Positions 20,465-45,912 of a stretch of DNA of 64,000 nucleotides are shown here, piece by piece (position 1 is the first letter of the stretch; every line of letters begins with the position of its first letter). The notes under the pieces were generated by a model. It had not been told where the DNA came from. It ran no database searches and saw only the letters and a list, made by a program, of their open reading frames with translations. Position numbers and translations under genes: made by a program. The DNA comes from Lepidodermella squamata. Its lineage: Eukaryota; Animalia; Gastrotricha. The stretch is taken from positions 1,488,001 to 1,552,000 of the forward strand of contig JBLDXI010000054.1 in NCBI GenBank assembly GCA_047495785.1, written 5' to 3'.

Positions 20465-21526
20465 ATGCCCATCAACGGTACAGTAGCCTTGCTTGATTTG
20501 TTACTTGCTACGTGTAACATTGATCCGTTGGTGAACTCGCCGAGTGAGCTACTCGGCCAACCTACAGTTGTTCAGCTGGCATTCGCTGCTGACAGGATGC
20601 TGAAAATTGACGATGTCGAAGAAACAATGTCATTGTCTGCGTTTTTCGGCTTCTTATGGCTTGACAATTGCACACAAGAAAATTCGGCTTATTTCAAAAA
20701 TCAGTCTGGCGATCTCGATGGACTGTTTTTTCTCAAAGGCAACGACAAAATTTGGTGGCCAACGGTCATTCATCGAAATAGCCCGAACAACCCAGCTATG
20801 AGTGGCGATGAAATAAGCCGATCAGTCGCGATCAATATTACATTGGGTGCCTATTCAAACCAGATCTATGGTCCTTTCACTTCATACTGTTCGATGCACT
20901 TCTGGCGATTCCCGTACGACACTCAGGAATGTTGCCTTCAATTAATGCTATTAGCGAATTCCAAGTTTGTGGTGATTGGTGACTTACTCTTCCCGAAAGA
21001 GTCGATAAGTAGTAAGTTAATGCCTGAGGGCTCAGTTTGGCAAGCAGTATCACAAGGAGCTCGACTCGGTGATGGAAACTCATCAGCATTTTTCTGCCTA
21101 ACTCTCAAGCGCGATCCGAGTTATGTGATTTCAAATTTGTTCGCCCCAAGCTTCATTCTCACAATTCTGAGCCTGTGCAGCTTCTTCGTACCAGCCGAAT
21201 GCCCGGATAGAGCTGCCTTCGCGGTCACTATAATGCTAGCAATGTTTGTTCTACAATCAGACATGCTGGCAAATCTGCCCAAGACGAGCGAGCCGATCTT
21301 AGCGACTTATTTCCTGTTTGGTCAGATCGTTTTTCAAATGGCTTGCGCTGTCTACGCGGCTGTGATGTGTTCTTTCATCACGTTGTACCCCAGAACGGCG
21401 GCTGTGAAATTTCGATTCCGAAAGACAATATTTCGTGGTTACCTTGTCGTGGATTTCACGGTATTTATACTATTCCTTGCTGCTATGGTCATTTTTTACG
21501 TGTCAATTTTCTTAATCATCAACTAG
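20465..21526 (+). CDS. Cys-loop ligand-gated ion channel subunit, type A, intronless, 353 aa
   Basis: IWWP, Cys-loop CSMHFWRFPYDTQEC, LKR pre-M1, four TMs, LPKTS M2-M3 loop. ATG chosen by alignment to paralogues. Confidence 0.92.
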   Translation: MPINGTVALLDLLLATCNIDPLVNSPSELLGQPTVVQLAFAADRMLKIDDVEETMSLSAFFGFLWLDNCTQENSAYFKNQSGDLDGLFFLKGNDKIWWPTVIHRNSPNNPAMSGDEISRSVAINITLGAYSNQIYGPFTSYCSMHFWRFPYDTQECCLQLMLLANSKFVVIGDLLFPKESISSKLMPEGSVWQAVSQGARLGDGNSSAFFCLTLKRDPSYVISNLFAPSFILTILSLCSFFVPAECPDRAAFAVTIMLAMFVLQSDMLANLPKTSEPILATYFLFGQIVFQMACAVYAAVMCSFITLYPRTAAVKFRFRKTIFRGYLVVDFTVFILFLAAMVIFYVSIFLIIN

Positions 21527-22111
21527 ACCTGAGTAAATCTTGGCTATACAAACCCCGTGCAGAACTCATTAACATCAGTCGCGTAACATCGAACGATCAG
21601 AACTTCTGCAAAATATAATAAAACAGTATAGTGATATGCTCTAGCCTAGCTTGGAGTCAGTTCAGGCTATATCAAAACGTTTTTGCTGCGCGGCTTGTTC
21701 ATTGCTTCACACAAAATTCGTACTAGTAACGTTCCGCTATACCATGTACTGTGGTGATGGGATATGTGTAGAAGAGAACATTGGGATAAAGCGAACATAT
21801 CACAATAAATAATGCGAATTTAAAGCTTTTTTGAAGCTAATTGAAGGCCGCTCACGAGCGGCGCGTCATTCTGTTCAAACTATCATTCAATTCAATTATT
21901 CCTTTTTGAAATTAGGAAGACGTAAGACCCTTCTGTGTTTCATGAGTTTACCTGTCAGGATGGCTTAATTGGATAGCCAAGTACATGATTATAGATCTAT
22001 CCTCAACAGATTAACATCAAAAGCGCCCGAGAAATAGGTATGTAAGCAAACACTTCTGTATGTTTATTGTCAGGCCGGAGGCGTGTTGTATGAATCCTCA
22101 ATCCTAAAAAT

Positions 22112-22122
22112 TAATGCGATTA
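22112..22122. promoter_or_regulatory. Palindromic TAATnnnATTA (paired-class homeodomain P3-type) site; also at 27452-27462 and 30647-30657
   Basis: Conserved in all three peptide-gene upstream regions within the block GCCGGAGGCGTGTTGT..GAATCCT.AATCCT.AAATTAATG.GATTAAA. Confidence 0.45.
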
Positions 22123-22256
22123 AAGCAATGACGAAATGTGAATCTGCCTGGTGGAGGCCAAATGAGTCATTTTATTCAGCGCATAAAAAGCATTGATTCC
22201 TGCGATCGGATGACCATTTTCCGGGTTGTTATCTCTATTTACTTTTTCCGGTGGAA

Positions 22257-22586
22257 ATGTGCGGAGTCTTATTAGCCGGTCTAACAACTGCCCTTGCCGT
22301 GCTGGAAGTAATCAATGGCTATCCCCTGCAGCAACCATCCGGGGAGGATTATTTTCCAGTTTTCATCACTCGAGAAAATCCTGCGATTGAAACTACAGGC
22401 AATTTTCTTGTTGAAAAATCCGCGGCTATGGATCGTCATTCTGCACTATTGGGACCATCGAACATCTTCGAACCAACCGAGATAAGCAATGTATTCCGGT
22501 TTCCAACCCCAACTACCAATTTCAAATTGTCGTACCTCAACGGTTTGATGGCGCCTTTGCAATCTTACTATATGTCCAGGGAGTAA
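22257..22586 (+). CDS. Small secreted peptide precursor, unrecognised family (copy 1)
   Basis: Signal peptide ending ING|YPLQ. C-terminus TTNFKLSYLNGLMAPLQSYYMSRE is identical to copy 3, with synonymous divergence. Confidence 0.8.
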   Translation: MCGVLLAGLTTALAVLEVINGYPLQQPSGEDYFPVFITRENPAIETTGNFLVEKSAAMDRHSALLGPSNIFEPTEISNVFRFPTPTTNFKLSYLNGLMAPLQSYYMSRE

Positions 22587-22767
22587 TATTGTTTGAATTG
22601 GTCGACATATCGAGACTGGACCCACGACCTTCTTAATTTAAATAAATGTCAAGTGAATAGAGGCTAAACACTAATGGACAAGCTTAGATCACGTGTTAGC
22701 TATGTTGATAATTAAGCCCGTGATTTCGAGTTTCGAGACAATGCCTACCTTAAGAGATCCGGATATA

Positions 22768-23375
22768 CAGTAAAAGTTGTGTAAACCGGAGTAGTCTTAA
22801 CCGGAAATTCTCTAAACCGGACGGATTTCAGTGGCTCTTGCAGAAAGTTTGCACTTTACATTATCAACTTGTCGTCTGAACCGGACTCTGTAAACCGGAC
22901 GTTTCCTAATTCGAAGCGATTTTTAGGGAAGGTTAAAAAGTCCGGTTTAGATCACTTTTCTTTGTTTTTCGTCATTTTCATTGCGGTTGGAAGCGTTAAC
23001 TTTGGGGTTGCTCATGAATGATAGCCAAAGCTTGGATGATCCACTGCGCCACTTCCTCTTATGAAATATGACGACGATTAAGTCATTTTGGTGAATAATT
23101 CCGGGAAAAGATATACGATATCACTTGTTACAAGGTCTAATTCATCGGTGAATACCTAAATCAAGGTAAGGGATTGGGATTATGGGTGTTTCAGGAAATG
23201 GGCGCCGATGGACAGGAAATAGAGAATTTAAATTTCTTGAATCTGATATTAACCGTATCATAAAACATTGATTTCCTAAGCTGGACTTAGTTCGGTGGTC
23301 ATTTAGACCAGATTTGCTCTAAACCGGATGATTTTGCCTGGCGCGCTGCTAGTCCGGTTCACACGACTTATACTG
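22768..23375. mobile_element. pogo/Tigger-like MITE
   Basis: TIRs CAGTAAAAGTTGTGTAAACCGGA / TCCGGTTCACACGACTTATACTG, TA TSD, internal AACCGGA repeats. The empty site is visible in the paralogous region ~31350-31380. Confidence 0.9.
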
Positions 23376-23977
23376 TATCTGCAAACTTCACAAAGCAAGG
23401 CAAAACCCGACAAGTAAGGTATGACGAGTTGATGGCCTTAATAAAGACATTAGAAAATGACGTCCGGTGTTGCCTGCTTTATCCCATGGTTCGCTGAAAA
23501 GTCGCCAAAATAGTTCCTAAATTCCATTACTTTTGCAGACTTCCCTTGTCATTCCTAATCAACCAGTGTAGCTCGTTGATGTTCAAATACGAATCTAGAT
23601 TGCGAGCTATCCACAGTGCCACGTTTAATTTATGTTAGACCGACGCCTGATGGTAACTTCTTTGAGAATAGTCTTTATTCATCTATCGATGGAGCTTGGG
23701 AACTGCTGTTTGCTCGTATGATGTCCTGATCAAGTGCGAAGTTCCTGAAATAAGCCTTATAAGTGATGGCAAAGAAAGTGCGAAAACGTCCATACGCTCC
23801 AGCCATGGTAGTTTAATTTTAGATCTTCAGAGCGGAGGTAAACGGCAGAAGAACGCCAACCCCGAAACGTCAATTAGGCCCTATTGGCGGGACTTAATTT
23901 AATGTTTACAAGTCACAGAATATTTAAGGCTGCTGAAAGTGACCTAAGAGAATTTCGCAGTCAAGTCAACTGAAAAT

Positions 23978-25229
23978 ATGAATACTACGCTCAACTCCTC
24001 TTCGGCCGGCAACATTCTCCTCAACTCTGGATGGATGCTGGCTGTAATACCCGGCCGGGACTTGGACACTCCGAGACCTTATTTCATTGCTGGATGCTAC
24101 CACGATTTCAGCGCTAAGACAGCGCAAGATCGCCTGCTGTATATCGGCCCCACCGTTTTTCTGGCGGTCTTAGCCATAATATCAAATATCGTCAGCATCC
24201 TACTCGATTTTAAACGCAAACTCAACCGCGACTTCATGATTTTATGCTCGATTTTCGCAGTGCGCAACATAATTTTCGCTGCTAATCTTGGTGCAACGAT
24301 GCTAATACCTTATAGGACAGGATTTTGGGAAGCTAGCTCCGAGGCTTGTTCTATAGCTCTTTGGATTGACGTCAGCATCGGGGCGTACGGCTGTTTCCTA
24401 AACATGATGATAAGCTCTGAAAGACGGTCTTGCATCCTCTTGGCCACCCGATACCAATCTAAAACGAAGAAAGTAGGAAAAGTTGATTCAAACAATTCAT
24501 GAATTAGGAATTTTATTCTAAAACAGTTATTAGCATGGGCTGTCCTTGGGTTCCTGGTATGTAGTCTAGCTGGCTGTGTAGTGACAGTTTGGCCATATCA
24601 ATCGCTGAGTTTGCAGTACCTTGTAGTTCCCGGCTACAACAACAACACGGCGGTGCCAATTTGCAGCACCTTCGACCTTACTTTCATAGGGTCCACCGAT
24701 ACGCTTGTCTTCTTAGTGACCTACAACCTGTGCTTCGCTCAAGCTACGACGGTCGTGCTGGCTCAAAACTACTGGTATGAGCGCTCGAGGTTATACAGAA
24801 TAGTCGATATTCTTTCTTTTATTCAGGGCTATTTTTTCGCATTATCGATGCCTCAGAAGATCTACTATGGAAATGAAGCGACCATCAACAGATAGCAGCA
24901 GGGACAAACTTTTGATAGCTCGGCAAAAGCGAGAACTTTTCATTGCAGAGCAGTGGTTCGCGGCATTCCTGGTCTACTTTGTCTGCAATCTGCCATGCTC
25001 ACTGCATTTTATACTTCAGCTGTTCTACAACGGCATTGGACCGCGTTACGCCACAAGTTGGACCCTCAAAATCGGCAATATGTGCCTGCTGGCTGAAATG
25101 AGCGTTTCAGTGCTGATTCGTAACATTCGGCCCAAGCCGTGGGGAAGATTTAAACTGCTATGGCAAGCACTGAAGGCGAAGTCTACATTTTCTGTTTTAT
25201 TTCGGCGAACTGTTGCTGTATCAGGATAG
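23978..25229 (+). CDS. Divergent class A 7TM GPCR; exons 23978-24472, 24527-24774, 24827-25229 (~381 aa)
   Basis: 7 TMs, W..SEAC before TM3, ISSERR (DRY position), FVCNLP in TM6, N-terminal sequons. Introns restore the frame. Confidence 0.85.
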
Positions 25230-25600
25230 CGATTGGTGAATGCGGAATCCTAACGCCATCAGATAAAACAATCATTTGTTTGAGCGTGGACCCTCTTATC
25301 GGCCTGAAACGTCTTTTGGATTATTTTGCCCCGAGACTATTTTATATTGTTTTGTATTTTACTCCAGATTAATGACATGAGAAACCGTTTTAGCAGTAAC
25401 TTCAGTCGAGTTTTACCATGTTTAATAAAATGTAGCAATAAATGTTTCAATCAACGTCGACGGGCTGAATTGGAGCGCAGATCAAGGGCCATGATCAGAA
25501 GAAAGCCTGAAAGCTAGGCTACAAAGTTCAGGATACACATTAGCTAAATGGCTGAAGTTGGATACATTCCATACATAGGATACATAGGAGGGAAGGGGTA

Positions 25601-25716
25601 CATAGTAACAAGAAATAACATGAACACCAATCCACCAATTCCACGGCAAGGTAAAAGATAACCATGAAGTGCAGCCGTCAGAAATTGAAATTTGACCGCG
25701 CCCTTCAAGGATACGC
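25601..25716 (-). pseudogene. Relic of a Cys-loop channel 3' end (M3-M4 loop/M4)
   Basis: AVKFQF...HGYL...VFMLFLVTM resembles AVKFRFRKTICRGYL..VFLLFLVAM of 33595..34662, at the same position relative to the GPCR. Confidence 0.65.
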
Positions 25717-26638: not shown

Positions 26639-27549
26639 GCGTTACGCCGGCACGAATTCTGGCGAGAAAGAGAACATTGTGAGAGAAGAGAGAATAATTG
26701 CGCCAATAGAGGCTGCCAATAGAGGTCAATAAAGATAAGATTGTAATACTACCTTTACGGATTTACTTACATGAAAAACCACAAGTAGCTGATATAAAGC
26801 TCAAATTTATCAAGTCAAAAGAATGCTCCAGATCGGAAGAAAGCTCCATGAACAAGAGCGCTGTTCTCCGTTGTTCACGTCATATTTTGAAGAACAAGGA
26901 TGAGCGCGATTTCCTATCGTTGTCAAAAAAACACCTACATTTTGAGATGGACAACCCAAGCGTTGTTACGATGCAAAACCTCTTTTTCACGATGATTTCA
27001 TTTATTTTGATGCGATCAAGACTGAGCAGCCATTGCCGACCTTAAATCATATACCACGCGAAAGAGCAGCTCTCGTTATATATGCATGCAATTCGGTGGA
27101 AAACGGAGATATCAGTTTTGAGAAAGCAGTCGATTTAATAATGAAGATCAATTTTTAGCTTGAGTGCTTACTCTGATCATTTTTCTCTATAGTCGGTAAT
27201 TGAGTTCAAACTAAGATTTGATTATTCCTCTTGTAAATAGCGTAGGACCCTTCTGTGGCATGAGATTACCTGTCACGGTAGCTTATACTAATAGGATAGC
27301 GGCAGTACTAGTTGATGATAACCACACATTGAACATGGACCTGTCACTCGACAAATGAACATGAAATGGCCGATGAATATGTAACCATGCATTGTTGTCT
27401 GTTCCTTAGGTCAAGCCGGAGGCGTGTTGTCGGAATCCTGAATCCTAAAATTAATGAGATTAAACCAATGATGACTGTAAAGCTGTTTTCTTCATAAGAA
27501 GCGATTGTTTTGGGATAAAATGATCAGGTTTCGCGCTGTTATCCTTCGG

Positions 27550-27896
27550 ATGACAATGTGCTGAGTCTTGTTAGCCGGGCTAGCGACAGCCTTAACCGTG
27601 CTAATGACGATCAATGGCTATCCCCTGCAACGAACATTCGATTCACCCGGAGAGGAATATTTTCCTGTTTGCAGGCTTCAAGAATACCCTGCAGCTGAAG
27701 CAGCGGACAGTTTTCGTGCCGAGAAATCACGGTCTCGCCTTCTTGCTGTGGAACGTCATTCTACACTATCGGGACCAGCGAACATTTTCGAAGCAACAAT
27801 TTTGTTTGGTTTCCAGCCCCAATTACCAATTTCAAATTGTCTTACCTCAATGGTTTGATGGCGCCTTTAAAATCTTACTACATGTCCAGGGAGTAA
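27550..27896 (+). pseudogene. Secreted peptide family copy 2 (pseudogene)
   Basis: TGA at 27562 in the signal peptide and a frameshifting deletion before the conserved C-terminus. Confidence 0.8.
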
Positions 27897-29080
27897 CTGA
27901 CTTTCGAAACTTGTTTGGGTGTGTCGATAAGTCGAGATGAAACGCAATACTTCGTGGAATGCCTAAAATTCAAGTCTATTTTTGTACAAAAATTTCGGCT
28001 CGATGCCTTAAATTTTCCAGGTCAAATTTCAGTGAATGCTTAAAATTCTTAAAATTCGGAGAACCGAAACCTTGGAAAAGTAGTGAGTCCGAAGATTGCT
28101 GCGATGAAGGTTGTACGCAAGGCAGCTATAAGTGAGATGCCTGGTTCCTAAACTGAAAGACTTGAACTTTATTTGGCGTGGAAGCGTCCTCTACATGATT
28201 GTAGTACATAATAAGGCATAAGTATTTGGCACAAACACTCGAGTGCCATTGCTGGTAGAAGGCAGAAGGGTCGCAGCGCCGTATAGGGTGTGAACAAGAG
28301 GGCGTGATGTTTTGAACTTTTGCACCATGTGACACTGCAAGCTCCATTGGCACCTTACTGACCTAGACGAGTGTCGTGCGGCTCCGCTCGATTATTGCTT
28401 ACCGAAATGATTGGGTGGTCGCGATGAAGGATCGACAATCGAGGGTATGACTGACACCGAACCGGAGGAGTGTAGCGGTCAAGTGCTCTGCTCGGTTAAA
28501 CACGCGCCGTTCGCTGCCATTCTGAGAGATTTCACTCTCGCACGACTCGCACAGTCATCTCCAGCCCGTTTATTCACTTGGAAATGGTTGAATCGCAAAT
28601 TGATCGTTGTTTTTAGCTCCCTCAAATGATTGAGTTTAAAGACTTGTTGTTTGCGATCCGTTGATTTCACGACAATGGGCGATTATTTCGAATAACAGGC
28701 GAGAGTCCTCTTTCGAACGGAAGTAGCCAAGTGGAAAAATTTCTCAATTGAAATTTTGATGAAATGGCAGGTTAACAGCTTTAACCTGAATTTCTTGGAC
28801 ACGCTGTAAATTTACATTACTGCTAACTACTACACTGATGAAGGAAAAGTTCGCAGTAAGTAAATTTTCTATTATCGGTGGCGTTCTTCCCTTATATTAA
28901 CCGAATAGCTTATTTTTCAAATGAATAATTCGCATTTATTCTTGTGTTTGAAAAAGCTCTAGGTATTTTCCGACTGCTGTTAAAACAAAAACATCGTTGT
29001 CAAATGCCAAATAGCAATGGAGCCCTGGTGGCTACTGGGATAAAGTTTGAGCTATAACTTGGATTCGCCCAGGATCCCCA

Positions 29081-29870
29081 GGAGAAAATTCAGCTTATTT
29101 AAAAAACCAGTCTGGCAATCTCGATACAATGTTTTTCCTCAAAGGCAACGACCGAATTTGGTGGCCGACATTCATTCATCGCAATAGCCCAAACAATCCA
29201 GCTATGAGCGGGGATGAAATAAGCCGATCTGTCTCGATTAATATTACATCAGGTGGCTACGCAAACCAGATATTAGGTCCCTTCATTTCATATTGTTCGA
29301 TGCACTTCTGGGGATTTCCGTACGATACCCAGGAGTGTTGCCTTCAATTCACCCTAGTAGCTTTTCCGAAGTTTGTGGTGATAGGTGGCCTGCTCTTTCC
29401 GAAAAATGCACTAGTCAGCAACTTTATGCCTGAGGGTTCAGATTGGCAAGTGGTTTCCCACGAAGCTCGACTCGGCAAAGATAATGTAACAGCGTTCTTC
29501 TGCTTAACTCTCAAGCATGATCCAAGTTATGTGGTTTCGAATTTGTTCTCGCCAAGCTTCATCCTGACTATTCTCAGCCTGTGCAGCTTCTTCGTACCAG
29601 CCGAATGCCCGAATAGAGCTGCTTTCGCAGTCACAATATTGCTTGCAATGTTCGTTCTGCAGTCCGAAATGCTGGCGAATCTGCCCAAGACAAGCGAGCC
29701 GATCATTGCGACTTACTTTATCTTTGGGCAAATTGTTTTTCAAATGGCTTGTAGTGTTTACGCTGCTGTGATGTGTTCTTTCATCACGTTGTACCCTAAA
29801 ATAGCGGCTGTAAAATTTCGATTTCGACAGACGATATTTCGTAGCTACCTTGTCGTGGATTTCGCGGTAT
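29081..29870 (+). pseudogene. Truncated type A Cys-loop channel
   Basis: Homology starts abruptly at ENSAYLKNQSG, fused to a copy of 26040-26235 (at ~28826-29060), and ends within M4. Confidence 0.85.
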
Positions 29871-30777
29871 TGTATGACAATCGCGAAATGACAACCTAAC
29901 ATGACTTTTAGAAATTCTGACAATCACATTTGCGAAAAGCTAACTATGGAATTTAAAAAACCCCTGCTAGCAAGAGTTTTCTCCTTTCCAGCCTGTTGAG
30001 TTTGAAACTGGATGCCGGATTTAATACGAATGAACGCGTCATCCATAGTGATTTTACTTTTGTGAAATGAAATGAAATGATTTATTTGTTTCTCTCCCTC
30101 GCGACTAAACGTCTATACCCTTTCGGGTTTTGAGGAAGGCGAAGGCAAGACAAACCAAAAGGAAAAATTTAGTCACCCTCCCCCACAGCCGAGAAAATCT
30201 TACTTTTGTTATAAAATTCAAAATCTTCAGTCAAATCCAGTCAACAGTTTTTTCGGAAATTTCGGTTACATTAACTTTTTTACTTTTTTGATATTCGGAA
30301 TGTCATTTTGGAGAGTAGATTGATGAAAAATTCTGCAAATTTCAAGCTTTTATTTGAGACCGATAGCTAGTCGCTCACATCACGGTTCCGTAATTCTGTT
30401 CAAATTATTAAGATTTCAATTATTCCTTTTACAAATTAGCGTAAGCCCCTTTTTGTGCCACTGTAACCTGTCAGAATAGCTTACTAATTGGATGTTAGCA
30501 GAAGTGCTAACTGATGATAATCATACATGGACCTGTCGTTCATCAGATGAACATCAAAGACGCCCGAGAAATATGTACCCAGGCACTACTGTGTGTACCT
30601 CAGGTCAGGCCGGAGGCGTGTTGTCTGAATCCTGAATCCTGAAAATTAATGAGATTAAAACCATGACGAAATGTGATTGTCTTCTGGGGGTCAAATTAGT
30701 CATTTTCTTCATAAAAAGGCGATTGGTTTTGCGATAAGGTGATCATTTTCGGGCAGTTATCCTTCTGATTTTTTCTG

Positions 30778-31128
30778 ATGGCAATGTGCCGAGTCTTGTT
30801 AGCCGGGCTAACGCTCGCCCTGCTGGAAGCAATAAATGGCTATCCCCTGCAACATGCACTCGATTCATCCGGAGAGGATTATTTTCCTGTTTTCCTAATT
30901 CAAGAAAGCCCTGCAGCTGACGCGACAGACTATTTTCCTGTCGAAAAATCCTCAACCCGTCTTGGAGCAGTGGAACGTCATCCTGCACTATTGGGACCTT
31001 CAAACCTTTTCCAAGCGGCTGAGCCTAGCAATTTATTCACGTTTCCAACCGCAACTACCAATTTCAAATTGTCTTATCTTAACGGTTTGATGGCGCCATT
31101 ACAATCTTACTATATGTCCAGGGAGTAA
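30778..31128 (+). CDS. Small secreted peptide precursor (copy 3)
   Basis: Intact ORF with signal peptide and the conserved C-terminal 24 aa. Confidence 0.8.
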   Translation: MAMCRVLLAGLTLALLEAINGYPLQHALDSSGEDYFPVFLIQESPAADATDYFPVEKSSTRLGAVERHPALLGPSNLFQAAEPSNLFTFPTATTNFKLSYLNGLMAPLQSYYMSRE

Positions 31129-31937
31129 CTGACTTCCTAAATTTGTTTGAAGGGATCGATAATTTGGGACTTGGCGCATGACCTTCTCGCGGAAGGTGTG
31201 AAATTTAACTCTAATTTTAGAAATAAATGGTCAAGACAAACAATAAAAGGTCGAGTGAATTACAGGCTAAACACTATTGAACAAGATTAAATTAGGTGTT
31301 AGCTTTTTAAATAATTAAGCGCGCGTGATTACGAGGCACTATATCCACCTTAAACGATCGGGATATCATCAAACTTCAGAATATAGGACTAGGTCCCGTG
31401 AGCTGGATGGCTAAATCAAAACAGTTGAAAGTGACGTCCGGTCGCCTGTTTTATCCCATCTGGTTCGCTGAGCAGTCGCCAAAATAGTTCCATTATTTTT
31501 GTCATTCTTAATCAACTAGAGCGAGTTATTGATGTCCAATTATGAATCTAGATTGCCTCTTCTCGTGCTATCCACTCGTGCCACCTTCAATTTATGTTCA
31601 TTGCCACCGCCAATCAACGTCTGATGGTAACTTCTTTTGAGGATAGTCCCATGTCTATATTCATTCATCAATGGATGAGTTAGGAATATGCTGTTGCTGG
31701 AAATGTCTTGATCAAGTGCGAAGCTCCCTGAAATAATTGTGATTGCACAGCAGGTGCGAAATAGTCCGTGTGTACACGCCATGGTAGTTTAATTTTAGAT
31801 CAGCTTTAAGTGGCAGGAGATCTCCGACCCCGAAATGTCAGTTTCCTTGTTGTCGGATCTTAAAATAATGTTTACGAGTCACAGAATATTTAAGGGTGCT
31901 AAATGCCCTAGGGGTCGTCACAGTCGCTAAACTCAAA

Positions 31938-33187: not shown

Positions 33188-33594
33188 ATGCTGAATCGTT
33201 TTCTGCCAGGACCCTGAATCGTTTTTTAGCTGATAAGGTTATAACGCTGTTGTTTTTATTTTACTTCGAATTCGTGAAGTTAGAAATATTTTTAGCAGAA
33301 ACTATCTGTCGAATATAACCTCGTTTTATTTAAAGAATTTGGGGAGCAGATCAAGGAGATATTACTGGGACCATTGTTCTGAATAAAGGAAGATAGACGG
33401 TGAGGCAGTTTAACGAAGTTCAAGACATACAAAACCTAGTTGGAGTAGGCGTGACTAGCTAGTAGAGGAGAAAAGGTGAAAGAGGGAGAAGGAGAAGGGC
33501 GGGGTAATTTCTGTCGCGTGAAAATTATCCAATATCAGTTAATTGTGAATAAATCAAGTGGTTTTACATTTTTCACGAAAAGCAAGTAATTCTG

Positions 33595-34662: not shown

Positions 34663-35525
34663 TTCAAAATTGTCTTGTGCGAATTCACGCCAATTGATGT
34701 TCTCGTTTCCAAGCGAGCTGTGAGTTTTGAGTTGGCTTGTTTGTCTAGCATCACGCCGTTTGCTCGTGAAATCAGTCTTTCAACCGCTAGCCTCACTGTT
34801 CTGATTCAGCTGGCACGTGACACGGGGAAATAGCGCGACTGTGTTAGTTCGGATTTTTTAATATCCGCATGTTTTTGGATATTTCAAAAGTTTACTTTGG
34901 CTTCTATTCAAAATCTAAGAGAAGATCACATCAGGCTGAATCCAACAAATGGAAACGCCAGCTGCAAATCTTCATATCCGTTAAGGAATGAGGGCTCTAG
35001 AACAAAAGAATCACAGAAATCAGAATTTGCTAATTTGTCCTCAGTCTCAGTTATCTGAAAAAGTCGGTATTATTCCGCAGATTTAACTAAATAAAAAACT
35101 GATGAGCGTGTTCATTCCGGCAGCGTGCTTCACAGCTAACAAGCAGATTTCAAGAATCATCTGGGTAGGAGAGTGATCTCCTCGTCAGACTTTGATTTTT
35201 GCTCTGAACACCTGCGAGTCAAAGTTTCAGTGACTAAAGTCGATCACATTACCAATCTATGTGAAATTGATCAATGCTAAACTGAAATCAATTTAGAATT
35301 ACGAATTACGTATCATGGCCAAAGCATGTTGTTGCTGCTTAATGATTTTATTATGCGAAATTATGTAAAATTGCACCGCGCTACCATCCTGTACAATTCG
35401 GAAAGTGATTGGGGTCCTTGCTCCTACTGATGCTTTGCTGGTTTCAGAATATCTTAGTACTTAGGGACTTCAAGAATCCATCGATAATCATGATGTCTGC
35501 TTCCCTCAATCGCTTGGCTTTGCCG

Positions 35526-36122
35526 TCAGAAATTTTCCAAGATTTTCGCCCAACGCTGCTCCTCATTTTGGCTGCGAATAACCGGCTCGAAGCCCAATTT
35601 CAAATAGGTTTTTATGGCCGGCAAACGGAAGTCTTGCGTCCTGAGAGTCGCCGATTTTATTGCAGCAGGGTACCGCGCCTTGAAATAGCGGAGCACCGCC
35701 GCGGTAACTTCGCGGCCCAAATGCTTGCCACTGTGCTGTTCATGTACGGCCACCCAATGCAGCAAGCCGGTATTCGGGTACTCCTCGGCCAATTTTGCCA
35801 GATCAGGCGTGCAATTCGCGCTCGCTGCTAAGAAATTAGCGTCTAAAATCCTCGCGCTCGCCATGCCAACAATGTTGCCGTGACTGCGGTGTTTGAGTAG
35901 TATGGTCGCTTTTACGCTGCTGTCTTCGAGTAGGACTTGTCGAACTCGCTCGTGCGTCCATTCGCCCATCTCGGTGTTGTACGTATTTATGTACAGCTGC
36001 AGGATTTCGTCGATGTCCGCTTGTGTGGCGTTTTGCCACTCGTGTAACGTGTAGTCGTCGCTGTGATTCGCATTGGGAAGATTTTCCAAATCTGACCTGT
36101 GCATTAACAAATAGCCTTCCAT
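35526..36122 (-). CDS. GNAT acetyltransferase, bacterial-like, intronless
   Basis: Motif A LHWVAVHEQHSGKHLGR and motif B LRTQDFRLPAIKTYLKLGFEP. Confidence 0.88.
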   Translation of the reverse strand: MEGYLLMHRSDLENLPNANHSDDYTLHEWQNATQADIDEILQLYINTYNTEMGEWTHERVRQVLLEDSSVKATILLKHRSHGNIVGMASARILDANFLAASANCTPDLAKLAEEYPNTGLLHWVAVHEQHSGKHLGREVTAAVLRYFKARYPAAIKSATLRTQDFRLPAIKTYLKLGFEPVIRSQNEEQRWAKILENF

Positions 36123-36650
36123 TTGCTGTGTGACGGAACAGAAATATAAGCGGCAAAAAACTGAATGTTTACAACACGATGCGATTATAACTTGATTCTT
36201 ATCAGGTTTTGGGTCTAGTGTTGATTTGCTATCGTACTATTTTGTTGGGAATAATCTACATAGCTCAACCGCCTCCCTGAAACACATAACACCATATAAA
36301 GGGAACTAACGATTGTCCTGTGGTTAATTTATTCAAGCTGAAATTGTATAAGCGTGGCACGCGAAAACTTCATTTATCCTTCATATGTAATTTGTATTAA
36401 CTATAATATGTGTTACAAAAGTGAAAGTGGTAGATCAGGAGTGTCAGCGAGACTGCACTAATCACTACCTGTCTGTCCCGAAGAGAACCAATTGAACCAA
36501 TTCTTTTGGACCAATTGAACTAAAATATAAACAATCCATAATTGAAATAGGTACAAATGACCGAACGAGCTGATTTAATAATATTATCTATAATGGTGCA
36601 TATGTCGTAGTCTTTCATTTGAAAATATTATTATATTGATATTAGTGCTA

Positions 36651-37718
36651 TCAAGTGTTAAGAATCTTTGCGAAAATTGAAGAGTAAAAGACGACCAGAA
36701 CAACGAGGAATACTACGAAAACCACGAAATCGATGACCATAAAAGCGCGATATGTAGTCGTTCGAAATTGCCATTTCGCAGTCGCCTGCTCCGGATACAA
36801 CGTGATGAACGAACACATCGCAGCTGCGTAAGCAGTGCAAGCCATTTGGAACTCAACTTGTCCAAAGATGAAGTAAGTCGCAATGATTGGCTCGCTTGTC
36901 TTGGGCAAATTCGCTAGCATTTCGGAATGCAGAACGAACATTGCAAGCATTATTGTGACAGCGAAAGCAGCTCTATCCGGGCATTCGGCTGGCAAAAAGA
37001 AGCTGCACAGGATCAGGATTGTCAGGATGAAGCTTGGCGCGAACAGATTATTAACCACGTAACTTGGATCGCGCTTAAGAGTTAAGCAAAAATAAGCTGT
37101 TACGTTATCCTCGCCTAATCGAGATGTTTGTGATGTTAGTTTCCAAAGTGAGCTTTCAGGCATAGCGTTAGCTGATGTTAGATTCATCATTAATGACACA
37201 CCATCTATCACTACATAGCGTCGATTACCTAACAGCGTTAGTTGGATACAACATTCCTGCGTGTCGAACGGGAATCGCCAGAAGTGCATCCGGCAATACG
37301 AGCTGAGAGGTCCGAATATTTGATTCACGTAAGTTCCATTTGATACATGGACAGCAACAGATCTGCTCATTTCATCACCTTTCATCGCTGGGTTGTTCGG
37401 GCTATTTCGGTGAATGAAGGTTGGCCACCAAATGCGATCGTTGCCATTGGGTAGGAACATAGTTTTAACGTGGCCCGATTTCTTTTTCAAATACGCCGAT
37501 ATGTTCGAGGTGCAGGCATCGGACCATATGAAGTCAAGCACGGCAAATACGGAGAAAGCCTCTTCGACATCGTCGATTTTCAGCACCCTATCGATGGCTA
37601 GTATCACACTGACATTGGTCGCTTTTTCGTTTATTTCGTTGGGAGAGTTGACTAGTGGATCAATCGGACACGTTGCAAGCAGCAGATCAAGCAGTGCAAT
37701 AGTTCCCTTGTTGTACAT
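36651..37718 (-). CDS. Cys-loop channel subunit, type B, 355 aa
   Basis: CRMHFWRFPFDTQEC, 4 TM, intronless. Confidence 0.92.
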   Translation of the reverse strand: MYNKGTIALLDLLLATCPIDPLVNSPNEINEKATNVSVILAIDRVLKIDDVEEAFSVFAVLDFIWSDACTSNISAYLKKKSGHVKTMFLPNGNDRIWWPTFIHRNSPNNPAMKGDEMSRSVAVHVSNGTYVNQIFGPLSSYCRMHFWRFPFDTQECCIQLTLLGNRRYVVIDGVSLMMNLTSANAMPESSLWKLTSQTSRLGEDNVTAYFCLTLKRDPSYVVNNLFAPSFILTILILCSFFLPAECPDRAAFAVTIMLAMFVLHSEMLANLPKTSEPIIATYFIFGQVEFQMACTAYAAAMCSFITLYPEQATAKWQFRTTTYRAFMVIDFVVFVVFLVVLVVFYSSIFAKILNT

Positions 37719-37824
37719 GTCATCGACTTTCCTTTACACAGGCTGAAATCAAAATGCGATGAAATATCTCTTGAAACTGCGCCAAACTATTTTAGCTCTG
37801 CGTCATTCTATTTGCTTTGTAATA

Positions 37825-38358
37825 GGCTTAATTCAAACACGTCGCACAAATTTTAAATCTGCAGCACAAAATGGATGTTTGTGTAGCGCATTTAGTGCGC
37901 AGCGCTTTTTAAACACACGCAGCACAAATTAAACAACCTGTCGCAGGATTTAAACAAATGTAGCCCAAACACAGGAAAATTGGAGCAATTTTTGCACAAG
38001 CCGATGAGCAGTTCTGTTTGCTCGATCGGCATGAGCATTGACGGCCTCGGCCAACTGATTTGCAGCCCGACGAGCAGTTGCATTTCACCAGTTTTTTCTT
38101 CTCAACCGGCTCTTCGTCACCCGATCCCGCCGGAGACGAGGCAACGGCCTGTATCACTGGTTGAAGAACCGATGGCTGAATAATCGTGCTTCAAATTTTT
38201 AAATTAGGGCTACTAAAACATGCGTTCGGCTGCACACGTGTTATTGCGGTTACAAAGCAAACATTTGAGCTGCACCTGAGAAACGCGCGCGGGTTTAATA
38301 ATTGTGCTGCGCACGTGTGCTGCAGATTTACAAATTAGGCGACGTGTTTCAGGGCGCC
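37825..38358. mobile_element. Non-autonomous TIR element with 9-bp TSD (Mutator- or Merlin-like)
   Basis: TTTGTAATA duplicated at 37816-37824 and 38359-38367. GGC...AAACACGTCGC..AAATCTGCAGCACA inverted ends. Absent upstream of the paralogues at 41751 and 45912. Carries a Cys-rich coding relic. Confidence 0.8.
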
Positions 38359-39167
38359 TTTGTAATATAGTATTCCGATAGGATGTTGGATCAAACAAAC
38401 GTAGACGCAATTTCGATTTTACTGGCTGTCTGCGTGTGTTTTTCAGGAAGTCAAGGTATCACCCATAGCTCTGACGTATAACAGTGAAAAGTCTGTTAGC
38501 AAGTTTAAAAATGACGTCAAAGCTTAAGCGAAGAAAATGTACGTCATCATAAAAATCGCTGGGAAAGCTATCACTAAGATGTCAAAGTTACTCGTGCGTC
38601 AAAAAGGGTGGGAAGATGTTTGTATGACAAATCTGACATTTGCCAGAAATGCCCTGATGGCATGGAAGGTGGTGCCTTTCTAGTCTGTTTTAAATCTGAT
38701 GTTTCCATTTTGATGAATACCACAAGTCTCCCAAGCCTTCTTCTAATTATGTTTGCCCAGCATTATGTTATTGCTTAGTAAAAAGCATTGCAATCGGATG
38801 TCTGATTAAAAACAAACGTTTCATCAATTTTGATTGCAACTATTTTGGGATTTTTTTGTATGAGAAGTGGCTTATCGATTATCGAAGCTCGGCCCTATTA
38901 GCGCAATATTAGCGGGTACATCACACACAGCGTGTTTTTTAAAGATCGATTTGGTGTTTAAAATTGCGGTTTTGGAGTGCAATTTTGTGGGGTGAAGACC
39001 ATTTTCCTTGCGATTTCAGCCAAATTATCTCTTTTTAATGTTTAAAAATTGCTCGTTTTTATTATAGTTTGCCCCAAAAGGCGAGAATGTTTTAGCGGTA
39101 ACTTTGATCTTTCAATGTTATGCAATGTTAATGCCTTTTGCGTGGAATATGTATGATTGATTTTCCA

Positions 39168-42140: not shown

Positions 42141-42159
42141 AATCTTATATAAGGAATCA

Positions 42160-42345: not shown

Positions 42346-42655
42346 CTTCCCCCGATTAGCCATCTCTATCACTCCGTTCTCTGTGACTGTAGAACTACGG
42401 AAAAAACTCCGGGCGCGAGAAAATCATCATGGAGTTCTGCATCCGGTACTTATCATCTAAAGGATGTTTGAGAATCGGAGCTGAAATGCCTGCACTGTAT
42501 AGAAATAAATTATATTTATGCCACCTACTGTATTTTAGCATAACAAGCTTTCGAAATGAAATGTTACAGCAGAAACTATGATCGATCAACTTAATGCGGC
42601 TAATGTTTACGCCTTTTGCGAGGATTATGTATAAGTAATCAATTTTTAGTCTAGT

Positions 42656-43708
42656 CTAGATGATGGTTAAGAATATTGACAGATAAAAAATGACCATGGC
42701 ACCGAGATATAACATAAAAACCGCGAAATCCACGACAAGGTAACCACGAAATGTAGCGTTCCGAAATTGAAATAGCGCAGCCGCTTTTCTGGGGTACAAC
42801 TCTATGAAAGTACACATCGCAGCTGCGTAGACACTGTAAGCCATTTGAAAAATAATTTGCCCAAAAAGTAAATAAGTCGCAATGATTGGCTTGCTTGTCT
42901 TCGGCAGATTCGCCAGCATTTCGGATTGCAAAACGAACATTGCAAGCATCAGTGTCACTGCGAAATCGGGGTGTTTTGCTGGTATGAAGAAGCTGCACAG
43001 GCTCAGAATAGTCAGGATGAAGCTTGGCGCGAACCAATTCGAAACCACATAACTTGGATCACGTTTGAGAGTTAAGCAGAAGAATGCGGTTGCGTTATCT
43101 ATACCGAGTCGTGCTGTGTTGGATATAAGTCGCCAAACTGAGCCCTCGGGCATGAAATTATTTGGTATACCATCTTTGGGGAAAAGCTAGTCCCCTAACA
43201 TCACAAAACTTCGAAACGCTTCTGAGGTGAATTCAAGGCAGCATTCCTGAGCGTCGTACGGAAATCGCCAGAAGTGCATTGAACAATATGAAGTGAAGGG
43301 CCCAAGTATCCGGTTCGCATAGGAACCATGTTTAAAATTGATCGCGACAGATCGGCTCATTTCATCACCACTCATAGCTGGGTTGTTCGGATTATTTTGA
43401 TGGATGAAAGTTGGCCACCAAATACGGTCAGTGCCTTTGAGAAAAAATAAGTCATCAAAATTGCCAGACTGGTTTTTAAAATAAGCCGAATTTTCTAGCG
43501 TGCAGCCGTCTTCCCAAATGAAGATGACCCCGGAAAACATAGAGATTGTTTCCTCGACATCGTCGACTTTTAGCATTCTATGACCATAGAAAATCAGGCT
43601 GACAACTGTAGGTTTGCCCTGCAGCTCACTAGGCGACATGGCCATGGGATGAATGTTACACGTAGCGAGCAACAAATCAAGCAAGGCTACTGTGCCGTTG
43701 TTGGGCAT
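42656..43708 (-). pseudogene. Type A Cys-loop channel pseudogene
   Basis: In-frame TAG at 43187-43189 (GD*LFPK vs GDLLFPK) and a 9-bp deletion removing RAA at the start of M2. Confidence 0.88.
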
Positions 43709-44844
43709 TTTATAGTTTCCTTGTGGAAGAATGCGCAATACTTGCGTATACCAAGCTTTGTTTGTTTTCTATTATCTTGCTTTCTCGTGGTGTTTATATT
43801 TCCTTAGGATGATGTATCACAAACATCCTACCTGTATCGAATATTTGTTTTAGGAAATACCAACGATCCAGAAGCTTTCGGAGGCCTTCACTTCAGGTAG
43901 GTATACAGGTGTACGCACGCAATGGAGTTCCAAATAAAGTAAATCAAAGCAAATTTACTTGCAAATCACTCAATCAATTTACTTGCACGTAGAAAGGTCA
44001 TTGACTGACGTGCCGCGGAGAATTAAGTCCGAATCTATGGTGGGGCCTGGCACGCGACCAACGTCATACATTGAATTGTTATCTTAGTTTCATGATCTCG
44101 TGCTAGGCGACCTTGACCCCGCTGAACTGTTATCGATTCAAAGTTCGAAGTAGCCTGATTCGCGACGTTACTTAATGCGCGAATGCAAAATCACTGATGC
44201 CATTTCTTGAAGCTTAAAGCCTTCGAAGTCTTCATCGCTGTTCTAGGGGAAGTGTCTATTGCCTGAAAAACAGGAAAACAAATAACGACTAAACAAAATG
44301 GTCAAATTCATTGGCAATTCGCCTTCGAAAATACGAAAATGAGCATTCAGAAGTAAAGCTTTTATGCAAATTTAGGGCACCCTCGAGCGATTTTCAATGT
44401 TTGCCTTTTTTAACTTTGAGCAACGATGGCTTGCTAACGGTGAGGAAGTGGCTCATGAGATGCAAGCTTGGAATGACTAGGGTTTGAAAAAAGTGGAAAT
44501 GTTTTATGCATATTTAGGTAACAACACTCCACCTAATAAGCACCAAAATAGCGAATTTCTAACTAATAAAATGCCAAAATCTGACCGCCTTCACAAGGTC
44601 TCAAAAGTGTACGCCGATTAACTATACCCCTGCCCTTTTCTCAACGGTTTTGATAAGGAATATTTTTTGTGTCTGCCACTGAGCATGGTCCAGTGGCGAA
44701 AAATCTGAAGCTACTACTTACTACTACCTAGTTGTACTACCTACTACAAATCTTCGTTTTCAACGGACTCACCTTGATTATTATTTCGACAGAGAGTTGC
44801 TCATTTTATTCCAAAACTTTGGAAGCCTCAATCATTCATTTTGG

Positions 44845-45912
44845 TCAAGAGTTAATGATCTTTACGAAAATTGAAGAGTAGAAAACGACCAAAACAACGA
44901 GAAATACTACAAACACGACGAAATCGATGACCAGAAAAGCGCGAAATGTAGCCGTTCGAAATCGCCACTTCGCAGTCGCCTGTTCGGGATACAGCGTGAT
45001 GAATGAACACATGACAGCCGCGTAGACGGTACAAGCCATTTGAAACACAACTTGTCCAAAGATGAAGTAAGTCGCAATGATCGGCTCGCTTGTCTTGGGC
45101 AGATTCGCCTGCATTTCAGACTGCAGAACGAACATTGCAAGCATTAGAGTGGCTGCGAAAGCAGCTCTGTCTGGGCATTCTGCTGGCAAAAAGAAGCTAC
45201 ACAGGCTGAGTATTGTAAGGATGAAACTAGGTGCGAACAAATTATTAATCACATAACTCGGATCGCGCTTGATAGTTAAGCAGAAGAATGCTGTTGCGTT
45301 TTTCGGGCCAACTCGAGTTGTATATGATTCTAGTTTCCAAAGTGAGCTTCCTGGCATAGCATCGGCTATTGTTTCCTCCACTGGAAATACCAAAGTCCCT
45401 AGTACAACATACTGAGAAATTCCCAACAGCATTATTTTGATACAACACTCCTGGGTGTCGAACGGGAATCGCCAAAAATGCATCGGGCAATACGAGCTGA
45501 GAGGGCCGTATATTTGATTCGTATAAAATCCCTCTTGTACAAGCACCATAACAGATCTACTTATTGCCTCTCCCTTCATAGCTGGGTTATCTGGGCTATT
45601 TCGGTGAATGAAAGTCGGCCACCAAATGCGATCGTTGCCATTGGGTAGGAACATTTGTTTAACATTGCCCGACTGCTGTATCAAGTCAGCTGAGTTGTTA
45701 GACGTGCATGCATCTTCCCAAGCAAAGACGACCAAGGCAAATACTGAGAAAACCTCTTCGACATCGTCGATTTTCAGCACTCTATCAATGGCAAGTACCA
45801 CAGTGATATTGGTCGGTTTGTCGTAGATTTCGCTAGGCGAGTTGACCAGTGGATCTATGTGACACGTTGCAAGCAGCAAATCAAGCAAGGCAATAGTTCC
45901 CTTGTTAGGCAT
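44845..45912 (-). CDS. Cys-loop channel subunit, type B, 355 aa
   Basis: CPMHFWRFPFDTQEC, 4 TM. ATG chosen by alignment to paralogues. Confidence 0.92.
   Translation of the reverse strand: MPNKGTIALLDLLLATCHIDPLVNSPSEIYDKPTNITVVLAIDRVLKIDDVEEVFSVFALVVFAWEDACTSNNSADLIQQSGNVKQMFLPNGNDRIWWPTFIHRNSPDNPAMKGEAISRSVMVLVQEGFYTNQIYGPLSSYCPMHFWRFPFDTQECCIKIMLLGISQYVVLGTLVFPVEETIADAMPGSSLWKLESYTTRVGPKNATAFFCLTIKRDPSYVINNLFAPSFILTILSLCSFFLPAECPDRAAFAATLMLAMFVLQSEMQANLPKTSEPIIATYFIFGQVVFQMACTVYAAVMCSFITLYPEQATAKWRFRTATFRAFLVIDFVVFVVFLVVLVVFYSSIFVKIINS

Follow-up and report, generated by a model that had tools for sequence, protein, structure and literature searches.

Divergent intronless nAChR-branch channel genes lacking the acetylcholine site form a tandem array in the gastrotrich Lepidodermella squamata

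Gene copies, duplications and transcripts

Within the window, the whole 64,000-nucleotide stretch of L. squamata DNA analyzed here, tblastn with one copy as query revealed eight copies of a Cys-loop channel gene, six of them intact and two broken (Table 1). The intact copies are single-ORF genes for proteins of 353–355 residues, and because their coding sequences can be aligned with relatives over the full length, the coding region is without introns. The same census of intact and broken genes had been given in a first-pass annotation made from the sequence alone, and tblastn and translation bear it out; the additional relic listed there is unconfirmed as a real copy, with a tblastn E value of 0.13 and no match in the DNA alignment of the duplicated cassettes, though its location fits cassette synteny.

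Table 1. Channel genes, pseudogenes and duplicated segments of the array (positions in the window)
Feature	Position	Strand	Evidence
c1, intact subtype-A subunit gene, 353 aa	20465-21526	+	ORF; tblastn 76% to c3 over 352 aa; subtype A clade 100/100
c2, truncated subtype-A pseudogene, without residues 1-71 and end of M4	29084-29899	+	tblastn aa 72-333 only; translation; inside duplicated cassette
c3, intact subtype-A subunit gene, 355 aa; AF2-modeled copy	33595-34662	-	Pfam LBD 4e-13, memb 1.5e-8; RNA-type contigs depth 5-44 over CDS
c4, intact subtype-B subunit gene, 355 aa	36651-37718	-	Pfam; subtype B clade 100/100; RNA-type contigs depth 4-32
c5, intact subtype-A subunit gene, 355 aa	39168-40235	-	Pfam; c7 sister, 100/100
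c6, intact subtype-B subunit gene, 355 aa	40684-41751	-	Pfam; c8 sister, 98/97
c7, subtype-A pseudogene, in-frame stop at codon 174 and 3-codon deletion at M2 start	42656-43708	-	translation; ORF pieces 42656-43153, 43187-43738
c8, intact subtype-B subunit gene, 355 aa from conserved ATG	44845-45912	-	ORF; purine at -3; tree
Doubtful relic, M3-M4 region only	25592-25705	-	tblastn 38 aa, 45% identity, E=0.13
Segmental duplication unit 1 (channel, ~800-bp repeat, orphan GPCR)	20677-25228	.	paralogous to 29083-33186
Segmental duplication unit 2	29083-33186	.	paralogous to unit 1

The two segmental duplication units share 83% identity in the channel, 74% in the repeat and 86% over 1.8 kb in the GPCR region (blastn). 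In the tree, subtypes A and B each form a clade with 100/100 support; c7 is sister to c5 (100/100), and c8 to c6 (98/97). A and B copies alternate along the chromosome, and A–B pairs were duplicated as units. The monophyly of the six copies, the two pseudogenes, and the segmental and A–B pair duplications make up a birth-and-death expansion pattern. Neighboring genes include three with an ANF_receptor domain, which we read as class-C-GPCR-like, and duplicated orphan rhodopsin-type GPCRs.

RNA-type contigs (bulk, low depth) span the coding sequences and are absent from intergenic DNA, which indicates that the array genes are transcribed; the run is labeled 'RNA?', consists of short contigs under a differently coded organism label, and allows cross-mapping of paralogs at 90% likeness. 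None of the channel ORFs encodes a separate signal peptide, and no upstream coding exon was found, a spliced 5′ exon being only incompletely excluded at the RNA depth examined. In-frame stops lie upstream of the ATG by 4 codons in c6 and 6 codons in c4, and every copy with a preserved 5′ end, seven in all, has the conserved ATG and a purine at -3. Among 43 relatives, 41 carry a hydrophobic leader and an amphipathic helix at the N-terminus; the window copies are without the leader, and their helix segment, with a mean Kyte-Doolittle value of 1.8–2.0, matches a signal-peptide core in hydrophobicity. Given that neither a separate signal peptide nor an upstream coding exon was found, the first 16 residues, which are hydrophobic, probably act as the signal sequence. 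The N205 sequon, the conserved Cys-loop and extra Cys pair, and the strongly positive M3–M4 linker fit a normal outside-in topology.

Fold, pore and ligand-binding site

PF02931 and PF02932 score above the Pfam cut-offs in all four copies scanned (c3–c6), and the AF2 model of c3 (pLDDT 93.1, pTM 0.84) comprises a β-sandwich and M1–M4 with canonical secondary structure. Foldseek matches the model to the muscle nicotinic acetylcholine receptor (nAChR), 5-HT3A, GluCl and Alpo4 at TM 0.7–0.8, with a probability of 1.00 for nAChR, 5-HT3A and GluCl. Residue conservation was counted over the six window copies and 43 relatives, with binding-site and pore positions mapped on alpha7. The Cys-loop cysteines C142 and C156 (C-x13-C) are invariant; F149, P150 and D152 of the F-P-F/Y-D motif are present in 6/6 copies and at least 42 of the 43 relatives, and the window copies keep the acidic β1–β2 loop. 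Pre-M1 Arg216, M2–M3 Pro272 and the 9′ Leu (L258) are invariant in the 49 clade sequences (in the relatives, pre-M1 Arg, M2–M3 Pro, L9′ and R0′ are each found in 43/43, and D-1′ in 38/43). The M3–M4 linker, with a net charge of +2 to +7, measures ~20 residues in the window copies and 14–25 across the clade, compared with 74–80 in nAChR-like outgroups, leaving the window subunits without a large intracellular domain. An extra cysteine pair, C17/C69, is conserved, and is absent from the nAChR-like outgroups aligned.

The pore of the window copies is lined by Thr6′, Leu9′ and Val13′, with Asp at -1′, Arg at 0′ and Pro at -2′. Pentamers with Asp -1′ and Arg 0′ would open a cation-preferring pore; selectivity is ambiguous in that Pro at -2′ is reminiscent of the anionic P-A-R motif, and also in that the best solved match of the six-copy profile is the anionic pH-gated SsCl, at 68 bits vs 62 bits for nAChR delta, a lead of only 6 bits where the clade-wide profile clearly prefers nAChRs. 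SsCl, a chloride channel gated by pH in Sarcoptes scabiei (PDB 9RGM-9RGP; PMC13065796), resembles the window proteins in the M1–M2 and M2 stretches, where both have Pro at -2′ and Arg at 0′, but has Ala at -1′ (the anionic P-A-R filter) where the window proteins have Asp.

The loop A Tyr, loop B Trp and loop C YxCC of the neurotransmitter site had been reported missing in the first-pass annotation, and HMMER alignments to nAChR delta and alpha7 confirm that the canonical acetylcholine site is lost from the window sequences: all five positions of the aromatic cage and the loop-C Cys pair are replaced. W55 of loop D corresponds to V/F/G/M/L60, Y93 of loop A to R104 (S in c5) next to an invariant His103, and W149 of loop B to I/L/V163. 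Loop C is cut down to ~7 residues with no cysteine, the vicinal Cys pair being absent, and its tyrosine positions are occupied by A199/R200 and by N205 (from Y195), which forms an N-x-S/T sequon in 6/6 copies.

Invariant columns make up 62% of the transmembrane domain (TMD) vs 38% of the extracellular domain (ECD), in agreement with the high conservation of the membrane region noted earlier. A dN/dS comparison, likewise suggested in the first-pass annotation, gave pairwise values of 0.17–0.39 for the ECD and 0.10–0.29 for the TMD (dS 0.4–1.9), and, over the six sequences, 0.60 for the pocket loops vs ~0.16 elsewhere. Most of the protein is under purifying selection, and the duplicates are old. 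Amino-acid differences between the copies cluster in the canonical pocket loops (G, D, E, B, F and C): of 35 hypervariable ECD sites, 29 fall there (odds ratio 9.8, p=7e-8). The pocket loops are at the same time surface loops, and surface loops change more quickly in any pLGIC family. dN/dS peaks at 0.88 in a 30-codon window in loop F, and no 30-codon window across the six sequences, pocket loops included, exceeds 1. The variable, mostly hydrophobic strings initially assigned to β1/β2 and to loop E/F do differ between copies, but the second set (SAFFGFLW and its counterparts) lies in strand β2, that is, loop D, and the hydrophobicity of the β1/β2 strings is partly expected because alternate residues point into the sandwich core.

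Placement among pentameric ligand-gated ion channels

The six window copies are monophyletic (100% support) and nested in a 69-row clade (99% support, long stem) of unnamed 350–420 aa proteins from metagenome contigs, some of which carry N-terminal extensions of 190–580 residues. Judged from the aligned sequences, the short linker and the extra Cys pair are the defining marks of this clade. Single window copies, or the six-copy profile, are nearly equidistant from all pLGIC branches; the profile of the clade ranks 57 nAChR chains first in the PDB (alpha7, 145 bits), followed by 5-HT3A at 114 bits, and the closest named sequence relatives are scallop and mussel 'alpha-6-like' proteins. The clade as a whole is nearest to nAChR alpha7, and not to cephalopod chemotactile receptors or bivalve expansions. 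The clade profile places the genes in the nAChR branch, and a phylogeny, as proposed in the first-pass annotation, puts the bivalve genes in a separate clade. The idea of an independent expansion, also from that annotation, is upheld by the monophyly of the six copies and by the octopus receptor CRT1, which, compared with a single copy, ranks below nAChR, 5-HT3A, GlyR and GABA-A subunits. Together, these results support the view that non-cholinergic ligand-gated channels of the nAChR branch have expanded independently in this lineage as a tandem array of intronless genes.

Sensory expression and gating by hydrophobic ligands have been demonstrated for the cephalopod chemotactile receptors. Like the window genes, these receptors (octopus CRT1; PDB 8EIS, 9E6B) are nAChR-branch, intronless, tandem products of a lineage-specific expansion in which the acetylcholine cage has been replaced, whereas the window proteins differ from them in having no intracellular domain, in the C17/C69 pair and in the want of a separate signal peptide. 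Against c3, CRT1 reaches 41 bits, less than nAChR delta (49.6) or 5-HT3A, and it is missing from the top 60 PDB hits of the clade profile; these scores, as a proxy for placement of the cephalopod receptors in the tree, argue against membership of their clade. The nAChR-like genes of bivalves and other lophotrochozoans have undergone a massive expansion and are intron-poor, tandem and divergent in ligand-binding residues, with pseudogenes (Jiao et al. 2019, PMC6896357); the bivalve expansions have been associated with development, immunity and stress and include genes with pathogen- and stress-responsive expression (PMC6896357). The window array is similarly intronless, tandem and lineage-specific, with a divergent ligand site and pseudogenes, but the bivalve genes form a clade apart from the 69-row clade. 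Alpo4 of Alvinella pompejana (PDB 8BX5, 8BYI), ligand-less after extensive screening (PMC10338036), is another orphan invertebrate receptor of the nAChR branch without the loop-C Cys pair, resembling the window proteins in fold and scoring 122 bits to the clade profile. It retains the aromatics F103, W159, Y199, Y205 and W65 and an intracellular domain of ~100 residues (PMC10338036), and the window proteins have neither.

The prokaryotic channels GLIC and ELIC share with the window proteins a minimal architecture of ~320–360 residues with a very short M3–M4 linker. To our knowledge, prokaryotic pLGICs lack the Cys-loop disulfide. In contrast, the window proteins keep C-x13-C together with F-P-F/Y-D, a metazoan motif, and fall within the nAChR-like sequences of animals, so that the short linker is a secondary loss and not a mark of bacterial origin.

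Possible functions

We propose, with a probability of roughly 0.6, that the array holds functional subunit genes of a very divergent, stripped-down nAChR-branch channel that would assemble into pentamers gated by a non-cholinergic ligand. Each subunit consists of an extracellular β-sandwich and four membrane helices joined by the ~20-residue linker, with no intracellular domain. The ligand would bind at the remodeled inter-subunit interface and open the pore, ligand preferences would differ from copy to copy, and gene order suggests that subtypes A and B may co-assemble as heteromers. Since channels without an intracellular domain are unlikely to be anchored at synapses, a sensor on a sensory or epithelial surface would fit better than classical fast transmission.

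What such channels would sense can be read in several ways. It is possible, if well short of probable, that they are contact or external chemoreceptors in sensory cells, gated by hydrophobic environmental compounds and convergent with the cephalopod chemotactile receptors. The birth-and-death pattern of the intronless tandem array with its pseudogenes, the lost acetylcholine cage, the clustering of variation in pocket loops, the missing domain for synaptic anchoring and the receptor-rich surroundings (the ANF_receptor-domain genes and duplicated orphan GPCRs) are consistent with this reading, and an ionotropic chemosensory role has already been raised for divergent molluscan nAChR clades (PMC13174522). 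However, dN/dS stays below 1, a conserved loop-A Arg beside an invariant His and a glycosylation sequon in loop C do not make an obviously greasy pocket, and similar bivalve expansions correlate with development, immunity and stress (PMC6896357). Rather doubtful in our judgment is a role as neuronal or neuromuscular receptors for endogenous non-ACh signals (amines, amino acids, peptides, protons or betaine-like molecules), comparable to the nematode LGC expansions. Nematode LGCs have been deorphanized with ligands such as amines, amino acids, peptides, protons and betaine-like molecules. The gating machinery, being intact, suits such a role, as does the strong purifying selection that acts on most of the sequence; His103 and Arg104 (S in c5) could coordinate a charged ligand or sense pH, and a pH-gated channel is the best solved match of the six-copy profile; against it, there is no intracellular domain for clustering, and differences that fall mainly in pocket loops are unexpected for one conserved transmitter.

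A role as epithelial channels or as channels that respond to immune challenge or stress, which has been suggested for some of the expanded nAChR-like genes of bivalves, appears very unlikely: the expanded intron-poor bivalve genes respond to pathogens and stress (PMC6896357) and same-clade relatives bear the long N-terminal extensions, but the window copies have no extra recognition domain and the bivalve genes belong to a different clade. Lastly, the missing signal peptide and the two broken copies of eight might point to non-functional retrocopies or to mis-targeted ('inside-out' or cytosolic) proteins. We consider this highly improbable, as six ORFs are intact despite a dS of 0.4–1.9 with dN/dS around 0.2, RNA-type contigs lie over the coding regions, the N-terminus has the hydrophobicity of a signal-peptide core, and the features of sequon, cysteine pairs and linker charge fit an outside-in topology.

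Our results suggest that the channels of the array probably sense some chemical other than acetylcholine, and a chemosensory role is plausible; because the bivalve expansions are tied to development, immunity and stress and Alpo4 is ligand-less, 'chemoreceptor' is one hypothesis among several. More speculatively, and in our view unlikely in its entirety, the 69-row clade may constitute an undescribed class of animal sensor channels, with a Cys-loop, an extra Cys pair near the N-terminus, no intracellular domain and, in some members, long N-terminal extensions. Such a class would be present in many arrays in this genome and would be its main ionotropic chemoreceptor family, independent of IRs, GRs and cephalopod chemotactile receptors, with A and B subunits as obligate heteromers and, in this array, a hydrophobic N-terminal helix in place of the signal peptide.

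Gene array and surrounding loci

Analysis of the ORF listing together with a tblastn search of the window with one copy revealed eight paralogous single-exon Cys-loop channel genes (c1-c8; Table), in line with the six intact and two broken copies reported in the first-pass annotation. The six intact copies are single ORFs of 353-355 aa, while c2 lacks its first 71 residues and the M4 end, and c7 is interrupted by a single in-frame stop at codon 174 and has lost 3 codons where M2 begins. A further relic copy listed in that annotation is unconfirmed, its position being plausible but its evidence consisting of a 38-aa match (E=0.13) with no match at the DNA level. A DNA tree divides the copies into subtype A (c1, c2, c3, c5, c7) and subtype B (c4, c6, c8), each with a support of 100/100, and contains the sister pairs (c5,c7) and (c6,c8), from which it follows that the A-B-A-B-A-B order of c3-c8 arose through duplication of A-B pairs. 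About 150 nt 5' of the ATG are conserved among subtype-A copies, and subtype-B copies have a different common upstream sequence; these stretches are probably subtype-specific 5' UTR/promoter modules. Pairwise dS values of 0.4-1.9 and dN/dS values of 0.10-0.39 point to copies that are old and under selection.

Positions of features in the window
Feature	Positions	Strand	Remarks
Channel gene array, c1-c8	20465-45912	c1 +; c3, c4, c5, c6, c8 -	eight paralogs
Stretch sharing the subtype-A upstream conservation	20250-20464
Duplicated 4.5-kb cassette, first copy	20677-25228		channel, ~800-bp repeat, orphan GPCR
Duplicated 4.5-kb cassette, second copy	29083-33186		same content
~800-bp sequence	21807-22586		within a cassette; copies 73-74% identical
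~800-bp sequence	27193-27930		between the cassettes
~800-bp sequence	30328-31162		within a cassette
1.8-kb duplicated segment	23431-25228	+	two ORFs; segments 86% identical
1.8-kb duplicated segment	31406-33186	+	two ORFs
Unconfirmed relic	25592-25705
ANF_receptor-domain gene	11590-13572	+	directly upstream of array
ANF_receptor-domain gene	13914-16142	-	directly upstream of array
ANF_receptor-domain gene	16478-18892	+	directly upstream of array
GNAT acetyltransferase	35526-36122	-	198 aa, bacterial-type; between c3 and c4

The ORFs of the 1.8-kb segments have a weak rhodopsin-family 7TM match and probably represent the two exons of an orphan GPCR that was duplicated along with the channel genes. 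Two of the three ANF_receptor-domain genes are single ORFs (742 and 804 aa), and we read the three as class-C-GPCR-like genes forming a small receptor cluster; an ankyrin ORF also lies upstream of the array. Every relative of the GNAT gene that has an organism name is bacterial (Armatimonadota, Capsulimonadaceae), and among the others several bear the annotation 'mycothiol synthase'; its best matches are 29-43% identical, making it a candidate for an expressed gene of horizontal origin. Contigs from one run labelled 'RNA?', with 38% of the sampled words, were placed on positions 33100-39000 (5,901 letters), where depth was 5-44 over the c3 CDS, 4-32 over the c4 CDS, highest over the GNAT gene (47-123) and zero in the intergenic stretches 34873-35266 and 37631-38812. 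The pattern in this bulk run indicates that the c3/c4 region is transcribed at modest levels.

Binding site, N-terminus and pore

The four copies scanned (c3-c6) match Neur_chan_LBD and Neur_chan_memb above the Pfam cut-offs, and an AF2 model of c3 built from a 51-sequence alignment (pLDDT 93.1, pTM 0.84) has the canonical beta-sandwich and four membrane helices, with a small hairpin replacing the intracellular domain; its Foldseek matches include muscle nAChR, 5-HT3A, GluCl and the orphan annelid receptor Alpo4 (TM 0.7-0.8). The Cys-loop C142-x13-C156 with its F-P-F/Y-D motif, the pre-M1 Arg216, the M2-M3 Pro272 and the pore residues Thr6'/Leu9'/Val13' are conserved in all six intact copies and nearly invariant in 43 aligned relatives.

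Mapping of the binding-site positions by HMMER alignments to nAChR delta and alpha7 bears out the loss of the neurotransmitter site proposed in the first-pass annotation. In alpha7 numbering, the loop D Trp55 corresponds to V/F/G/M/L60 in the window copies, the loop A Tyr93 to R104 (S in c5) adjoining an invariant H103, the loop B Trp149 to I/L/V163, Tyr188 to A199/R200, and Tyr195 to N205, which forms an N-x-S/T sequon in 6/6 copies; loop C is shortened and devoid of its Cys pair. With the aromatic cage replaced and this pair gone, a cholinergic cation-pi site is impossible in the window proteins. Among the 43 relatives, 8 keep the loop-B Trp and 17 a loop-C aromatic residue, so that complete cage loss is specific to the window lineage.

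At the N-terminus, 41/43 relatives carry a hydrophobic leader and, after it, an amphipathic helix bearing 2-7 charged residues, while the window proteins start with 4 residues and a 12-residue segment of mean Kyte-Doolittle value 1.8-2.0 containing a single acidic residue. A signal peptide encoded by an upstream exon was rejected as unlikely, since all copies having a 5' end (c1, c3-c8) begin at a conserved ATG that has a purine at -3, in-frame stops lie upstream of it (at 6 codons in c4 and 4 codons in c6), no splice acceptor is conserved across copies before or just after the ATG, AG-to-ATG distances in subtype-B copies are inconsistent in phase, and no splice-like joint was seen in the RNA-type contigs. 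We infer that the N-terminal segment itself would serve as the signal sequence, having originated either from the old helix turned hydrophobic or from the old leader joined to Cys17 through a deletion. A normal topology is favoured by the positive charge of the M3-M4 linker (+2 to +7) and by conservation of the sequon and the cysteines.

The cytoplasmic pore mouth reads Pro(-2')-Asp(-1')-Arg(0'). An acidic -1' residue is a known determinant of cation selectivity and predicts a preference for cations, a prediction qualified because Pro at -2' is found in anionic P-A-R filters and because the best solved match of a profile of the six copies is the anionic pH-gated channel SsCl (68 bits, versus 62 bits for nAChR delta).

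A clade of nAChR-derived channels

A profile search run exhaustively over 1.84 billion representatives returned 45 proteins at E<=1e-30 and was needed to recover the family, word-indexed homology searches having yielded only 4 and 10 relatives. Full-length relatives are mostly 350-420 aa, the 18/18 looked up come nameless from ENA metagenome assemblies, and among named sequences those of bivalves are nearest. The window's own protein has no database record, and look-alike clusters in the Atlas carry mainly the labels Arthropoda, Mollusca or Nematoda. A maximum-likelihood tree of 90 proteins unites the six window copies in a monophyletic group (100%) nested in a 69-row clade (99% support, stem length 0.92), which is separate from the scallop/mussel 'alpha-6-like' clade and the remaining nAChR-like sequences. 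The clade is marked by a Cys pair at positions 17 (43/43) and 69 (42/43), which outgroups do not have, and by an M3-M4 linker of 14-25 residues. A profile of 49 clade members and zero outgroup sequences matched 57 nAChR chains (alpha7 145 bits; Alpo4 122), followed by 5-HT3A (114), and neither anionic receptors nor the octopus chemotactile receptor (CR) CRT1 were among its best 60 matches. This ranking and the tree identify the clade as nAChR-derived; the window copies alone look equidistant from all branches because they are so diverged. The sequence comparisons argue against membership in the cephalopod CR clade, CRs having been compared by profile score outside the tree, and place the clade apart from the described bivalve expansion. 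A bacterial origin of the minimal architecture was rejected, as the proteins retain the Cys-loop motif of metazoans and the genes fall within animal nAChR-like sequences.

P0005 from Mactra antiquata, the top match, was rejected as a clade member: it consists of four fused canonical LBDs, and the scores of these domains add up to its total. In the clade members P0042, P0043, P0051, P0074, P0079 and P0112 the channel-profile match lies at the C-terminal end, behind N-terminal extensions of 190-580 residues in which no Pfam match was obtained at E<1e-4. The metagenome contig carrying the relative P0022 (L003:1-11758) is eukaryotic, very compact and intron-poor; its channel gene is a single ORF and adjoins housekeeping genes packed with tiny spacers, which encode Rab geranylgeranyltransferase alpha, a PCI-domain protein, mitoribosomal S12, hexosaminidase and Fuzzy. 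No description of a Cys-loop clade devoid of the intracellular domain was found in the literature (rotifer, copepod and 'Pro-loop' papers), by which novelty is not proven.

Pocket variation and putative sensor function

Selection was examined on the six intact sequences only, with dN/dS pooled within subtypes. The canonical pocket loops (G, D, E, B, F, C) reach 0.60, versus 0.16 in the remaining ECD and in the TMD, and 29 of the 35 ECD sites with at least 4 residue types lie in pocket loops (odds ratio 9.8, p=7e-8), loop A being invariant among copies. No value exceeds 1; the maximum over 30-codon windows is 0.88, at residues 166-195 in loop F. Such a pattern fits diversification of a ligand pocket, and exposed loops usually tend to behave in the same way. 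Gene conversion was rejected as the cause of TMD conservation, since dS is only slightly lower there (0.50 versus 0.65-0.69) and purifying selection, at a dN/dS of 0.16, suffices.

Taken together, the window genes appear to encode functional subunits of non-cholinergic, putatively ligand-gated channels with a diversifying pocket, which are probably cation-preferring and possibly assemble as A/B heteromers. A sensor role would most economically account for four features together: the lack of an intracellular domain, variation focused on the pocket, the birth-and-death of copies and the apparent family size. The specific chemoreception favoured by the first-pass annotation receives a probability of about 0.3 from us; reception of endogenous non-ACh ligands is slightly less likely still, and immune or stress roles are improbable.

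Intronless tandem nAChR-like expansions have already been described (PMC6896357), and a chemosensory role has been raised for divergent nAChR clades (PMC13174522). The established precedent, as cited in the latter source, is the work on cephalopod CRs (CRT1 is solved as PDB 8EIS and 9E6B), according to which nicotinic receptors can be converted into environmental sensors. The general idea is therefore published, and what is new is the clade, its extreme reduction and the leaderless N-terminus; the window channels, structurally more extreme than cephalopod CRs, lack the intracellular domain, the aromatic cage and a classical signal peptide.

Apart from the genome of Lepidodermella squamata, the clade has so far been seen solely in metagenome contigs that carry no annotation. 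If the sensor reading is true, it would constitute a second independent case of a nicotinic receptor turned sensor, meaning that this route is repeatable, and would provide a very small eukaryotic Cys-loop channel (~340 residues mature) attractive for structural work and ligand-discovery screens. Even without a chemosensory role, the array poses a question of assembly, in the duplication of an A-B pair, and one of biogenesis, in the translocation of an ECD without a separate leader.
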